A DNA stretch of 47,036 bases from Macrostomum lignano (Eukaryota), in the NCBI GenBank assembly GCA_002269645.1, contig NIVC01004401.1, positions 1 through 47,036 on the forward strand, read 5' to 3'. How positions within the stretch are numbered: position 1 is the stretch's first letter; every line of letters starts with the position of its first letter. This document shows, piece by piece, positions 6,541 through 12,500 of the stretch. Below the pieces are notes generated by a model. It made no database searches, was not told the origin of the DNA, and saw nothing but the letters and a program-made list of their open reading frames with translations. A program made the position numbers and the translations under genes.

Positions 6541-9500
6541 GTGAGTCCCTTGCTGCCCTCCTGTTAGCTGGTGTCAGTCAGTGGGGCGTGATTTTATGGG
6601 AAATGTGTCAGTGTGATTAATGAATGCGTAAGTCAGGTCGAGAGAATGTGTCAGCCAGTGTGAGTGATTGATCAGGTTGAGAGAATGTGTCAGTCAGTAT
6701 GAGTGATTGGTCAGGTTGAGAGAATGTGTCAGCCAGTGTGAGTGATTGATCAGGTCGAGAGAATGTGTCAGCCAGTGTGAGTGATTGATCAGGTTGAGAG
6801 AATGTGTCAGTCAGTATGAGTGATTGGTCAGGTTGAGAGAATGTGTCAGCCAGTGTGAGTGATTGATCAGGTCGAGAGAATGTGTCAGCCAGTGTGAGTG
6901 ATTGATCAGGTTGAGAGAATGTGTCAGTCAGTATGAGTGATTGGTCAGGTTGAGAGAATGTGTCAGTCAGTATGAGTGATTGGTCAGGTCGAGAGAATGT
7001 GTCAGTCAGGTTCATATAATGCCTGATTGCAGCGCATGGGCATTTTGGCGGACGGCGTCCGGCGCGGATCTAATACGGCGCAGCGCAGCGCGTACGGCGC
7101 GCGGCGATTAGTACGGCGCGGCGCGGTACTAATTAGATGCCGAGGCATTTAGGCTTGATAAGACAGTTATAGTTACTCCTGCCGTTTACCCAACATTTAC
7201 CCTGCGTTAATTTTGCTTTAGGGTTTCTTTCACAGGTAAGTCATTTCACAGCGTGGCGCAGGTTGTGTAGGCGTCTGGCGTACTTAAGCCATGCGCTGCA
7301 ATAGGGATATAATGTGTCAGCGAGTGTGAGTGATTAGTCAGGTTGGGAAAATGTGTCAGTCAGGCTGAGATGCTGTGCCCATGTTTTTCCTCCATCAGGA
7401 TCTGTACTGCGTACGAAGCGACTTGGGCAACCTTTTGAAAGCTCTTGGCCGATTGGACGAGGCCAAGGTAAGTATAACGCAGGTATTGTGTGCATTTGCA
7501 TCTTTCATAAAATTGCTCACTAGGCAAGTAAGAGTGCCGCTAGCTAGATAACACCCTGTTTCCCCTTTGATAATAGCTCTAAACTTTGCAAAATTGAAAT
7601 TAACAAAAGTACATAGCCTAGAATTTGAAAGTACATAGCTAGTTTGTAAAGCGCTCTCTACTACTAAGAGAGCAAATCAAAGATCGATGAATTCCGTTTT
7701 TGGGATCAGTTATAACTAAAGAAATCGAAACGATTGCATTTTTTTGTTTTTCTTAGACGTCATATAAAAGTGCAATCGCTTTTTCTGGAGTTAAAAAAAT
7801 ATTGAAAATTTAATTTGCGTTTTATTAAATATAAACTATTTGCCCTTCCAAAGCAGACTTTGCCCAGCATTTGAAGCAGCGCCATCCTTGCATTTTGTTT
7901 AGCCTGTTGATTTACACCAGCCATGATGAAGCCATTATTAATTACGTCTAATTGGTGCGGGCTAAGGCCGAGGCTGAGCCTACAGAAATTGGTCAGTGAA
8001 CAAAAATCAATAGATAAATTACCGTCTTAAACTATTGAAATTTAACAGTACATTCTGGCACTGTAGGAAGCTCAGCCTTAGCCCCATCATTTTTAGGCAT
8101 AACTCTTTCTTTTTTCTCTGGTCAGACTGTGTCCCTGATGCGATATGCTACTGCTATTTTTATATCTATTTTCCACGCATATTGTCGCTCTGTCAAACTC
8201 AATCAAGGCATTGGAAAGCTCTGTGATAAAAATATTGGCAAATTCAGCTCATCTGATGTTTGTCTTTGTCGCATCAGTAGTATGGCTGGAGGTGCTGTGT
8301 GCGAATAATTGAAATTATTTTATTTTGTTTTAATCCCTTGCTCGCAGAAAACTGGTGCGTGCACCCGCCTCCAGCCCTGCTGCTCAACTTATTTTCATAG
8401 ATGGGCGCGTCAAATTCCCTTTGCGATTTTGTATTCTGCAATTATGCGAGATGCTTTTTCCCCTTAGACACCCCATCTCCATGGCAACCAGTTGTTGACT
8501 ATGATTTAGCTGTTGACTAAAGCAATTTGATTATGATCGATTTTGTCGCTTAATAAGTGAAGAACATTTTAAACAAATAAATAAAATGTTGATACTTTAG
8601 GCGTTCGATTTCTGTTGCCATAGAGACTGGAGGCGTTTTTTTATCAACCCGCGCCCGTCTCTAGGGTCTTTGTCTTTCTTTCTTTTCTGATTGCTTGTTT
8701 TTTCTTCAGATTTTAAATATTTTCAGTGCTGGAAATTTGTCGGACTTTTTGGTTAGGCTTTTTAATCTTTAGAAAATTTTGGCATTAAAATGCCACTCAA
8801 ATTTCAGAACGTTGCTTTCGTAGACAGCCAGCCAGCCAGCCAGCCAGCCAGCCAGTTTCCAGACTGAACTCTCGGCATTTTTCTCCATACTTTCCTGTTT
8901 TTTTGTCTCCTAGAAGAACACTTCTAAAGACTTTTTTAAAAAGAAAGACAAAGACGCTAGTTTTGTGTTATCATATTTTTGTAAGCGATGAGTTTTGCTG
9001 CTTCAAGTGATGCGTAATTAAAATGCATGTGCAGTTAATTGCACACGACTTTTATTATTTCTCTATAGGAAAATATTCTTTGCAGCAGACCTCAACGCTT
9101 GGACTAATAATTTTGTTAGTGGAGCTTATTTTGCGGCATATATCAGCATCAGGTGCAATACTACTTTTTAGTAACAGGAACTGATTGAAGAATAACTAGA
9201 TATGTCACAGTTAAAGTTTGTCAAGACAGTATCAAATTTGATGTGGCAGGTGAAATTTCCTTTCCTTCCTCGATCGCAGTTTGCGGCCTCAAGAGCATTG
9301 AGATGAAGAATGAGAAAGTATTTGTGAATACAAGCATAACTCGGGCAAGAAGCGAACCCAAGACGGACGAAATTCAGCCTAGGGCGGGCAGGCCCAATCT
9401 AGCTCAGCCAATGAGAGAGCAGTAAGGATAGAGATCAAAGTCAGACGGACGAAATTCAGCCTGGGGGCGGGCCCAATCTAGTCCAGCCAATGAGAGAGCA

Positions 9501-12500
9501 GTAAGGATAGAGATCAAAGTCAGACGGACGAAATTCAGCCTGGGGGCGGGCCCAATCTAGTCCAGCCAATGAGAGAGCAGTAAGGATAGAGATCAAAGTC
9601 AGACGGACGAAATTCAGCCTGGGGGCGGGCCCAATCTAGTCCAGCCAATGAGAGAGCAGTAAGGAGAGAGATCAATGTTACATACAAAAAGGGCAAGAGG
9701 AAAGCCTAAGAGTATTTGCAAGTTTTCCTGAAATCTTCAGTCTTGAATAAATTTCTCAAGGCAAAAACGCTCACTTTGCTTCTATAAAGATCTAGATCTA
9801 GTTATTCTAGTATCTGTGGCGGCAGCAATAAACTGATGCTTATATTGTCAAAAAACAAGCATTCCAACTGGCAATGTATTATTGAATGGTTTAGTTTATT
9901 TTATATTTTCCAGTGTCTTGTAAAATTATAATTTGATTTTGACAATTGCGATAATATCAAATAGATATAATTATATCAGTTCAGTTTGTGTCTCAACAGA
10001 TACAGAGACGAGTTTGACCAGAAACTGCTGGCTAAACCAATCGGCTTACAAAAGCTGGGACTAAATTCCTTTAAGCTAACAAAAATGAAAAAAAATATCT
10101 AAATATTATAAAAACAGATGCAGTGTTTTGAATGGCGGGCAGATTTTGGAAGTGAGGAGCAGTTTGATCTGTCTCATTAAGGCCAGGACCACCAGCAGTT
10201 GAAGGCGCTAAAAGTCCAACCCACTAAAAAGCTCGGCATTCCAGTTTTGTTGTTTGCGATTTGAAAAAAAGCAAAACTTTTCCAAACCTTGGCTATTACG
10301 GATTCAGACGATTTGTTGTTTCAGACTATGAGCACTGTGACTCTCACTGTGACAGCCTCTTCGCTACTGCTGTGAACAGCTTCAGGTATTTAATTGCCAA
10401 TTTATGTTTTTTGAAATATTAAAATTGCCATTGATTTGTGCCAACGACTGTGCTTAATATATATCAGCTCATTTTTTTGCATTCCAACATTTTTAAGAGG
10501 TTGTTAAAAAGTGTAAGGCCGATGTTCCTGTTCTGTGTGAATAAAGCTTTCACAATTTCTGTGGAAATTGTTGAGAGTTTTATTTCATTAAACAGCGCCA
10601 AAGTCTTTCAACTTTAGCAATTCTCTCATTTTCAAACGTTTTTCTGGTATCAGTTTTTTTGCGTATTGTATATTTTATGATAGAATTTTTGGAACAAAGC
10701 TGTCCTACTTCAGTAACACTGTTTCAATCGATTCGTGTTCTTGTGTCTCTTTTTGTAACAATATTTTGTTTAACTAATTTTGCAACATTTTAACAAAAAT
10801 AGTAAGTAAAACGCGTTTTTCTACATGGACTACTGACAGAAGTAGTAGTATATTTTTGTATGCTTTTGTTATAACTCAGCTCTGAATTTAAGGAAAATAT
10901 TTTTTCCAATAAAAAACAAAACGTAAATTAACACACTTTGAAATACTACTATTAGTAGGTGAATGAGTTCAAAACTTTGATTGAAGTATTTTTTGAAATC
11001 AATTAAAACTTATTTTTGAGTCTAATTCCTTGTCCCCACCCACTCCCCCTTTTCGCAATTCTCCCCTCGCAATCCGGGATAATCAATAATCCTCAACCAC
11101 AAAAACGCCCAACATACGAACCGCGCTATTTCACCAAAACACGCACAAAAATCAAGGCGTGCTACCTCAAAGCCATCGAAACCTGTCCGACGTTTGCCGT
11201 TGCCTGGAGCAACCTGGGGTGCGTGTTCAACGCACAGGGCGAGATCTGGTTGGCTATCCATCATTTTGAGAAGGTGAGCTTGCAGATATTCAGTTATTAT
11301 TGTTTAGTTTAGTAGTTATTAGTTATATAGATTAGGTAGATTTACGGGTAGCTATTACGCAGATATTTGGCTAGCTATTAGGAAGATATTTGGCTAGCTA
11401 TTAGGCAGATATTTGGCTAGCTATTAGGCAGATATTTGGCTAGCTATTAGGCAGATATTCGAGTAGCTGTTCGGTAGACATTCGAGTAGCCATTGTCGAA
11501 TAGCCGAGCCACATTCACTCCCTCAAACCTTCGCCCACACGAAAGGCCGTGTCGCTGGATCCGAACTTCCTGGACGCCTACATCAACCTTGGCAATGTGT
11601 TCAAAGAGGCTCGCATATTCGATCGAGCTGTGGCCGCTTATCACCGAGCTTTGCACCTGTCCAGCAATCACGCCGTAGTGCACGGCAACCTGGCCTCTGT
11701 GTACTACGAGCAGGGCCTGATCGACCTGGCCATCGAGACCTACCGGCGGGCAATTAAAATCCAGCCAAATTTTCCCGACGCCTATTGCAATTTGGCCAAC
11801 GCTCTGAAAGAGAAGGGCAGAGTTGGCGAGGCCGAGGAATGCTACAATACGGCCTTGAAACTGTGCCCATCCCATGCCGACTCGCTCAACAATTTGGCTA
11901 ACATTAAACGGGAACAGGTACGCGGCTTGTTAGATAAATCTTGGAACAATTTATCGTCATTTTAGTGCCATTTCCATAGCTAAATGTGCCAGTTCCATAG
12001 CTATATGCCATTTTTTTCATAGCTATAAGTGCCAGTTCCATAGTTATAAGAGCCATTTTTCCATAGCTATAAGTGCCATTTTTCCATAGCTATAAGTGCC
12101 ATTTTTCCATAGCTATAAGTGCCATTTTTCCATAGCTATAAGTGCCATTTTTCCATAGCTATAAGTGCCATTTTTCCATAGATATAAGTGCCATTTTTCC
12201 ATAGCTATAAGTGCCATTTTTCCATAGATATAAGTGCCATTTTTCCATAGCTATAAGTGCCATTTTTCCATAGCTATAAGTGCCATTTCCATAGCTATAA
12301 GTGCCATTTCCATAGCTATTCCGATGTAAGTGCCATTTCCATAGCTATTCCGATGTAAGTGCCATTTCCATAGCTATTCCGATGTAAGTGCCATTTCCAT
12401 AGCTATTCCGATGTAAGTGCCATTTCCATTACATAAAAGCTTAGCATCATTTCCATAGTTCAGAGTGGCTATCATTTTAAACATACTGTAAGTAGTAATG

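Follow-up and report, generated by a model that had tools for sequence, protein, structure and literature searches.

Is the splicing control of O-GlcNAc transferase (OGT) that is known from vertebrates built on an intron of much greater age? In vertebrates, OGT intron 4 is detained in an O-GlcNAc-responsive manner, which needs an intronic splicing silencer (ISS) or decoy exon (Park 2017 PMC5588854; Tan 2020 PMC7261177; Govindan and Conrad 2025 PMC12017769). The regulated intron has been termed ‘the fourth intron’ (PMC5588854). The conserved silencer/decoy exon of the human gene is 143–153 nt long, and its published conservation extends only to jawless fish. The question is raised again by a stretch of 47,036 nt from the flatworm Macrostomum lignano (contig NIVC01004401.1), called here the window, in which the OGT gene contains a 3689-nt intron at what looks like the same place. 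An original prediction, made from this DNA, had proposed that the intron is the counterpart of the vertebrate detained one, that it ends in a weak AAG acceptor, and that the O-GlcNAc homeostatic switch may extend to this distant lineage. Sequence comparisons described below give good support to the orthology of the intron and to a special architecture of its 3′ splice site. Selective retention of the orthologous intron, together with poison cassette exons, is established in other invertebrates.

Orthology and Preservation of the Intron

The draft translation of the TPR and catalytic exons is 100% identical to the M. lignano O-GlcNAc transferase P0001 (UniRef A0A1I8H1S4), and the window is the OGT locus of this species. 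Residues 10–1072 of P0001 were threaded exactly on the + strand, with GT-AG introns. This threading bears out the coordinates, the length, the flanking exons (69 and 117 nt) and the acceptor previously given for the intron, which extends from 7468 to 11156 (GTAAGT...ATCAAG, 3689 nt, phase 0). The OGT introns in the window measure, in order, 858, 3689, 272, 653, 611, 631, 424 and 577 nt. The intron had been presented as 4–13 times longer than every other supported OGT intron of this DNA, which holds for the comparison with the other introns of the window (272–858 nt); in the gene as a whole it is the second-longest, because intron 1, cut by the window start, exceeds it (4602–7958 nt). It is markedly longer than all the other internal introns, intron 1 being the only one above it.

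OGT proteins were also threaded on five other loci, from a fish (L003), the hemichordate Ptychodera (L006), the brachiopod Lingula (L004), the annelid Owenia (L005) and the cestode Mesocestoides (L007). In the protein alignment, the intron at EAK-(A/S)CYLK (the hyphen marks its position) occupies one single column, in phase 0, in all six lineages. Only one other intron position, QYNP-DLYCVR, is universal among the six. The fish counterpart is the fourth coding intron (RLEEAK-ACYLKA, 3218 nt, ending in ...CCACTGAAG / ...AAATCCACTGAAG). Residues and phase are equal in fish and flatworm, in agreement with the position predicted for the intron, that of vertebrate OGT intron 4. On these sequence grounds, orthology between the M. 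lignano intron and the detained intron 4 of vertebrates is very probable.

An AAG acceptor had also been predicted at the vertebrate ACYLK junction. The fish intron ends in AAG, and a vertebrate therefore has such an acceptor at this place. In the human gene, the residues at the exon 4/5 boundary are presumably the same, the fish serving as proxy.

The length of the intron also stands out in every lineage compared, and no other ancestral intron has stayed long in all of them. It ranks first of 21 OGT introns in the fish, first of 21 in Lingula, first of 20 in Ptychodera, second of 15 in Owenia, second of 9 in M. lignano and first of 4 in Mesocestoides (combined p = 0.006). In the cestode, it measures 420 nt, versus 35, 35 and 44 nt for the other introns of the gene. 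The position has moreover been kept in a context of massive intron loss. About 19 intron positions count as ancestral, since two or more of the four intron-rich species have them; M. lignano keeps 4 of them and the cestode 3. Those kept in both flatworms are the studied intron and its two neighbours, M. lignano having additionally kept intron 1. The OGT gene of Mesocestoides corti contains only four introns and is almost intron-free outside the EAK-SCYLK region, where introns of 35, 420 and 35 nt flank two small exons.

A Predicted Distal Branch Point at the 3′ Splice Site

Splice sites were scored with a pooled position weight matrix (PWM) built from 84 other OGT introns of the six species. 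The AAG acceptor of the M. lignano intron is the weakest in its gene: it scores -1.1, versus a 10th percentile of 5.6 among the 84 other OGT acceptors, and its last 20 nt show the lowest pyrimidine (40%) and T (5%) contents in the gene. Stronger unused acceptors had been noticed inside the intron, and this is confirmed by seven internal AGs scoring at or above the 25th percentile of real acceptors (3.5 ± 2.1 in shuffled sequences). As a hallmark of the intron, the AAG triplet alone was however dropped, since the neighbouring 272-nt intron likewise ends in AAG (CACACGAAAG), which makes it a weaker argument than previously held.

The same acceptor had been described as devoid of a pyrimidine tract. 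This is true of the proximal sequence, but a C/T tract lies distally, at 11027–11069. The last AG before the acceptor is found at 11019–11020, and the AG-free run which follows, 134 nt in length, is the longest of 246 such runs in the intron. It opens with a branch-point-like motif located just upstream of the tract (Table 1). This predicted distal branch-point architecture, which had been missed by the original prediction, is a stronger argument than the AAG triplet.

A similar layout is found in other phyla. The AG-free zone before the acceptor measures 134 nt in M. lignano, 134 nt in the fish, 194 nt in Lingula, 101 nt in Owenia and 106 nt in Ptychodera, versus typically 20–50 nt in other introns, and in each of these five lineages it is the longest or second-longest AG-free run of the intron. 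Each zone opens with (T/A)CTAAT, directly followed by a strong C/T tract, CTAAT being found only 2–5 times per intron. The predicted branch adenosines are located at about -132, -125, -162, -77 and -102 in M. lignano, fish, Lingula, Owenia and Ptychodera, respectively. In none of the six lineages does the PWM score of this acceptor reach the 10th percentile of real acceptors.

The sampling was extended by scanning metagenome and metatranscriptome contigs with the exon-5 peptide, which yielded 80 loci. Of these, 47 differ from one another in exon sequence and have their upstream intron intact. The AG-free zones of these 47 environmental loci have a median length of 83 nt, versus 32.5 nt in 84 control introns. 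Zones of at least 75 nt are present in 29/47 environmental loci versus 7/84 controls (p = 1e-10), and AAG acceptors in 15/47 versus 6/84 (p = 4e-4).

A class of 3′ splice sites with distant branch points and long AG-exclusion zones was reportedly described by Gooding et al. in 2006, and this class as a whole is said to be enriched among regulated sites. The flatworm intron shares its defining traits: the AG-free zone is at least 100 nt long (134), a pyrimidine tract follows the branch-point consensus at the upstream edge of the zone, and the acceptor is the first AG downstream. Its branch point is predicted from sequence, and the link to regulation is a class statistic, not a proof for this particular site.

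Retention and Cassette Exons in Other Invertebrates

Protein sequences were searched with a query consisting of the 23 residues of the ...LDEAK exon followed by the translation of the flatworm intron. This query returned many truncated OGT open reading frames (ORFs), 66–210 residues in length, which run from GRLDEAK into non-OGT sequence. Among the 120 read-through matches listed at this junction, 41 have their upstream exons spliced, and 13 of these 41 include the native N-terminus. A control query at the preceding junction (after QYNP) gave only 2 of the 120 matches listed (p = 5e-12), both lists being equally biased toward read-through by the design of the queries.

More complete pictures are provided by nucleotide contigs. 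A full-length OGT transcript from a marine metatranscriptome (L009) contains a complete GT...AG intron of 1817 nt at EAK-ACYLK, followed by an 860-residue ORF. The same kind of transcript comes from an insect RNA run (L012); its intron measures 1678 nt, and the uninterrupted ORF after it extends over 850 residues. This intron is the only one kept in seven independent full-length contigs (L009, L012, L022, L025, L029, L031 and L071; 1678–2641 nt), and the uninterrupted ORF downstream of it extends over 499 residues in L025 and 850–868 residues in the other six. Small inserts are also observed at the junction, of 70 nt in a bivalve-like contig (L008) and of 64 nt in arthropod-like contigs (L013/L014). 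Both shift the frame and contain an in-frame stop, and they are therefore poison cassette exons.

The exon-5 scan has the advantage of being unbiased as to splicing state. Its transcript-like contigs comprise 10 that are spliced at this junction, 5 that retain the whole intron (L022, L025, L029, L031 and L071; 1707–2641 nt), two more being fragments of such contigs, and 4 with inserts of 74, 145, 756 and 1373 nt. Retention of intron 3, intron 5 or any later intron was found in none of them. Spliced and retained forms come from apparently one species in the pairs L017/L022 and L027/L029. Exon 4 ends in the contigs with GRLDEAK, the invertebrate form, and the nearest named OGTs are those of arthropods or molluscs, with 77–89% identity, a level at which the contigs are assigned no more finely than as arthropod- or mollusc-like.

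Conserved islands are common to the retained introns of three arthropod-like groups from marine metatranscriptomes, as exemplified by AAATATTATTTCTGACTTGTTT and AAGTCAGTAAATGGTATGAGCC. These islands are candidate lineage-specific regulatory elements, which might be analogous to the vertebrate silencer. No cassette sequence common to different species was found. Public annotations already include unnoticed cases. Several short ‘OGT’ proteins of 163–194 residues end 4–30 codons after GRL(D/E)EAK, in a sequence starting with Val (GTN donor), e.g., in Frankliniella (P0134), Acanthoscelides (P0163), Melopsittacus (P0227) and Cyprinus (P0186). These annotations, from two insects, a bird and a fish, are retained-intron models that had passed without remark. 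One read-through ORF of trematode-like sequence (P0138) was set aside as genomic, since it also keeps the small preceding intron. No paper was found in the literature on the retention of this intron in invertebrates or on its 3′ splice-site architecture.

Eleven other transcript-like contigs of the exon-5 scan (L018, L024, L030, L034, L037, L039, L043, L046, L070, L078 and L079) start 100–2300 nt upstream of the ACYLK exon, lack the preceding exon, and are fully spliced downstream. Either they represent retained-intron RNA that was assembled incompletely, or their transcription began inside the intron. An internal transcription start is the main alternative function for this intron, which would then be long as the host of an internal promoter, an alternative first exon or a spliced-leader acceptor, and would give rise to an N-terminally shortened OGT, in the manner of mOGT or sOGT, instead of being retained. 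Such a function would be in line with these 11 contigs, which extend from the intron into the ACYLK exon and are otherwise spliced, with the 50 codons open upstream of this exon in M. lignano, with the CCAAT and GC boxes of a 79-nt repeat in the flatworm intron, and with the human mOGT start, located 150 bp inside intron 4 (PMC4901358). It nevertheless appears unlikely. The 150-nt in-frame extension contains no ATG, and the next in-frame Met past the ACYLK boundary of P0001 comes about 190 residues further, near residue 357. The frame is open largely because AG, and hence TAG, is absent there. Minisatellites are found all over the window, and it is the repeat copies that produce the CCAAT excess. 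The contigs themselves are equally well explained as incomplete assemblies of the retained intron. Five ORFs that enter the ACYLK exon from the intron (P0136, P0156, P0195, P0214 and P0221) were rejected as evidence for an internal start: they also continue past HHFEK into non-OGT sequence and were treated as genomic.

Contents and Variation of the M. lignano Intron

The intron had been described as mostly unique sequence, rightly so, since it holds only a 79-nt × 3.9 array and a (CAGC)n run. No part of it is repeated elsewhere in about 120 kb of M. lignano sequence, consisting of the rest of the window and two further OGT copies (L001 and L002, both from assembly GCA_002269645.1). The 79-nt repeat looks promoter-like, and its copy number varies between the gene copies. 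A nested gene, a non-coding RNA or a transposon remnant could be invoked to explain an intron of such length and unique sequence, the only two features in favour of this idea, which is highly improbable. The Rfam scan of the intron gave only one mir-202 match, at chance level (E = 0.49), the tRNA scan gave none, and no ORF of more than 63 residues lies inside the intron on either strand, the longer listed ones extending into the flanking exons. The lack of any copy of intron parts in the 120 kb mentioned above also speaks against it.

Candidate internal exons were sought with the pooled matrices. The segment 9069–9249 is the sole candidate whose acceptor and donor both reach at least the 25th percentile of real sites. 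Flanked by cttttattatttctctatag upstream and gtgaaa downstream, it has an acceptor score of 9.8 and a donor score of 8.1, and these splice sites are identical in all three gene copies.

The length of the intron is 3607–3778 nt in the three M. lignano copies, whereas the other introns vary up to about two-fold. Over the intron, the three copies are 96.8–98.6% identical. Footprinting among them revealed invariant runs of at most 141–153 nt, which are not convincingly beyond expectation (indels counted as single events). The divergence of the intron was also compared with that of four-fold degenerate sites, for each pair of copies: 2.3% versus 4.2% (p = 0.016), 1.4% versus 2.7% (p = 0.036), and 3.2% versus 4.2% (not significant). 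This lower divergence would be weak evidence of constraint at most.

Comparison with Known Regulated Introns

The flatworm intron is like the vertebrate detained intron 4 in its EAK-ACYLK boundary, its phase, its relative length and its AAG acceptor (for the fish), and the flatworm and fish introns are also alike in their 134-nt AG-free zone opening with CTAAT and a C/T tract. It differs from the vertebrate intron in having no sequence similarity to that of the fish and no demonstrable decoy exon.

Retention controlled by decoy or poison exons has been described for SF3B1, ARGLU1 and OGT (Parra 2018 PMC6097662). The flatworm intron likewise is long and has strong unused internal sites, and the orthologous intron of other invertebrates holds cassettes of 64–74 nt (those of 64 and 70 nt with stops). 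It differs in that the sole M. lignano candidate, 9069–9249, is no better than chance.

In Drosophila, expression of the OGT gene sxc is said to depend on long-intron splicing (Ashton-Beaucage 2010, cited in PMC5588854). Another paper mentions a retention event in sxc in passing (PMC11765297). This system is unlike the present one in that an ISS-like element is reported lacking and the intron concerned is not named. The detained intron of MAT2A (PMC5959247), whose detention responds to a metabolite, offers another parallel: it concerns a metabolic enzyme whose mRNA yield is set by the delayed removal of one intron, which may resemble the mechanism proposed below. Gene, sensor and cis-elements differ from those of OGT, and the comparison is only an analogy.

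Regulated or Constitutive Intron?

Regulated retention of the intron in M. lignano is plausible, with chances that look about even; the comparative RNA evidence is what makes it plausible in the flatworm lineage, by analogy with other invertebrates. The competing explanation is that of an ordinary constitutive intron, made long by neutral accumulation, in which the distal branch point and tract compensate for the AAG, and which has no regulatory role in M. lignano. This is a serious possibility, although we consider it rather doubtful.

A number of points weigh against regulated retention, and several of them directly favour a constitutive intron. The AAG acceptor is not unique in this gene, as shown by the neighbouring 272-nt intron, and M. 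lignano OGT acceptors are generally C-rich, not T-rich. The cestode ortholog has an ordinary strong acceptor with a 19-nt AG-free zone, so that the architecture is not universal among flatworms. The candidate exon 9069–9249 stays within chance (1 found, 0.5 ± 0.9 in shuffles). At the nucleotide level, the best match in an all-against-all comparison of the orthologous introns of the six lineages has E = 0.17, and the flatworm intron has no similarity at E < 0.1 to those of the fish and the other phyla. The vertebrate-type silencer or decoy exon was accordingly not found in the flatworm intron, the fish intron serving here as a proxy, not the human element itself. The arthropod-like islands and cassettes have no counterpart above chance level in the flatworm intron or in other phyla, and the three M. 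lignano copies are too alike for conserved islands to be revealed. Drosophila OGT is stated to have no ISS-like element (PMC5588854), and no homology to intron 4 was found in Drosophila, C. elegans or zebrafish (PMC4901358). None of the peptides that read-through of the M. lignano intron would encode is present in the protein database, an uninformative negative since this collection holds no transcript-derived M. lignano OGT. Finally, the retention seen in assembled transcripts could, at least in part, come simply from the longest intron being removed slowly. Genuine alternative processing is indicated by the cassette exons, but only for the species in which they are seen.

A purely constitutive intron, on the other hand, would not readily account for a position kept in two flatworm lineages that have lost almost all other ancestral introns, nor for the stable length across three gene copies. 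The distal branch-point layout common to five phyla and enriched in the 47 environmental loci, and the selective retention of the orthologous intron in other invertebrates, also stand against it.

If the intron is indeed regulated in M. lignano, the following sequence of events can be proposed. The distal branch point and tract would be the assembly site of the U2 small nuclear ribonucleoprotein and U2AF, from which the AAG would be used solely as the first AG downstream. Intron length and distal layout would render removal slow and open to competition. In a fraction of OGT transcripts, the intron would then be retained or detained, or splicing would go to internal stop-containing exons; neither outcome would yield full-length enzyme, and OGT output would be tuned after transcription. 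The balance of isoforms might be set by O-GlcNAc levels, as in mammals, a step suggested by homology only.

The different parts of this proposal do not have the same strength. Control by this intron is probably far older than the vertebrates, given the unusual 3′ end found across phyla and the retention of the intron in other invertebrates. That O-GlcNAc feeds back on this intron in the flatworm can be proposed only tentatively, by homology with mammals. The most inclusive proposal is that unproductive processing at EAK-ACYLK, through retention and stop-containing cassettes, is ancestral to bilaterians, operates on a conserved 3′ site with a distal branch point and a weak acceptor, combined with lineage-specific internal elements, and serves as O-GlcNAc feedback in M. 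lignano as in mammals. Taken as a whole, it is conceivable but rather less than probable.

Other Features of the Locus

The window begins about 1.85 kb downstream of exon 1 (MNYVPADLT, 28 nt), which is located at 10001–10028 of L002, window position 1 corresponding to L002 position 11850. The first 6145 nt of the window are therefore part of intron 1, which measures 7958 nt in L002 and 4602 nt in L001. The part present in the window has a GC content of 24–34%, versus 44–58% in the gene body. The coordinates of all features are collected in Table 1.

Each of the other OGT introns (6541–7398, 11274–11545, 11918–12570, 13033–13643, 14103–14733, 15139–15562 and 15918–16494) is filled largely by its own minisatellite, with units of 39, 23, 23/29, 19, 27, 31 and 32 nt. 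Their lengths vary up to two-fold among the three copies, e.g., 858/1502/819 nt and 653/746/1392 nt, and the remainder of the window is likewise densely packed with such arrays. In exon 8 (14734–15138), 58 residues of the intervening domain after HRNM are absent from a second UniProt model (P0123, 1014 aa), which suggests either alternative splicing inside the exon or a gene model of another kind. Exon 8 of copy L001 is 6 nt longer. Downstream of OGT, a Gly/Pro/Ala-rich ORF of 215 residues (21857–22501) corresponds to a 211-residue called gene in L001 and L002, with no Pfam hit.

The window is 99.4% identical to L002 over positions 1–6970 and about 95–98% identical thereafter, and about 87–96% identical to L001 (window 1–31000). 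Since it is identical to neither copy, it would therefore represent a third haplotype or homeologue, or come from another assembly, with mosaic identity.

Table 1. Features of the M. lignano OGT locus (window coordinates, except in the last row)
Feature	Position	Strand	Basis
3′ part of OGT intron 1, AT-rich	1–6145	+	L002 alignment, GC content
OGT exon 2, TPR region	6146–6540	+	Exact protein threading
69-nt exon, 23 residues, ...LDEAK; counterpart of vertebrate exon 4	7399–7467	+	
Studied intron, 3689 nt, phase 0; probable ortholog of vertebrate OGT intron 4	7468–11156	+	
Consensus donor GTAAGT; score 12.4, best in gene	7468–7473	+	
(CAGC)n microsatellite	8825–8855	+	
Candidate internal (decoy/poison) exon, 181 nt, frame-shifting, in-frame stop	9069–9249	+	Pooled splice-site matrices
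79-nt × 3.9 tandem repeat; one AGCCAATGA (CCAAT box) and one GGGGGCGGG (GC box) per unit	9361–9675	+	
Open extension, 50 codons, in frame with ACYLK exon, no ATG	11007–11156	+	
TCTAAT, branch-point-like motif opening the AG-free zone; candidate branch adenosine 11025, ~132 nt before acceptor	11021–11026	+	
AG-exclusion zone, 134 nt; 3′ part 11070–11153 is an A/C-rich spacer	11021–11154	+	
Distal C/T-rich (polypyrimidine) tract, 43 nt; best 20-nt window 90% pyrimidine	11027–11069	+	
AAG acceptor, PWM score -1.1	11154–11156	+	
117-nt exon, 39 residues, ACYLK...HHFEK; counterpart of vertebrate exon 5	11157–11273	+	
Next intron, 272 nt, AAG acceptor, ancestral position, kept in both flatworms	11274–11545	+	
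Remaining OGT exons (11546–11917, 12571–13032, 13644–14102, 14734–15138, 15563–15917, 16495–17048) and minisatellite-filled introns	11546–17048	+	
Conserved islands of arthropod-like contigs (coordinates within each retained intron)	L009 298–509, 681–769; L022 379–591, 891–1133; L025 452–583, 977–1208; L031 516–556, 883–909		

Implications for OGT Control

The detention of OGT intron 4 for O-GlcNAc homeostasis has so far been described as a vertebrate mechanism. The present evidence points to an older origin. In no fewer than five phyla the intron is preserved, is long and has this unusual 3′ splice site, and in invertebrate RNA it is selectively retained or gives way to stop-containing cassettes. 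If this is true, the post-transcriptional self-limitation of OGT would be about as old as the bilaterians. What the lineages share would in that case be the layout of the splice site and not the sequence of the vertebrate silencer, and this would provide a handle on how the switch works. The question would also become testable in tractable invertebrates, including M. lignano, for which RNA interference and transgenesis exist.

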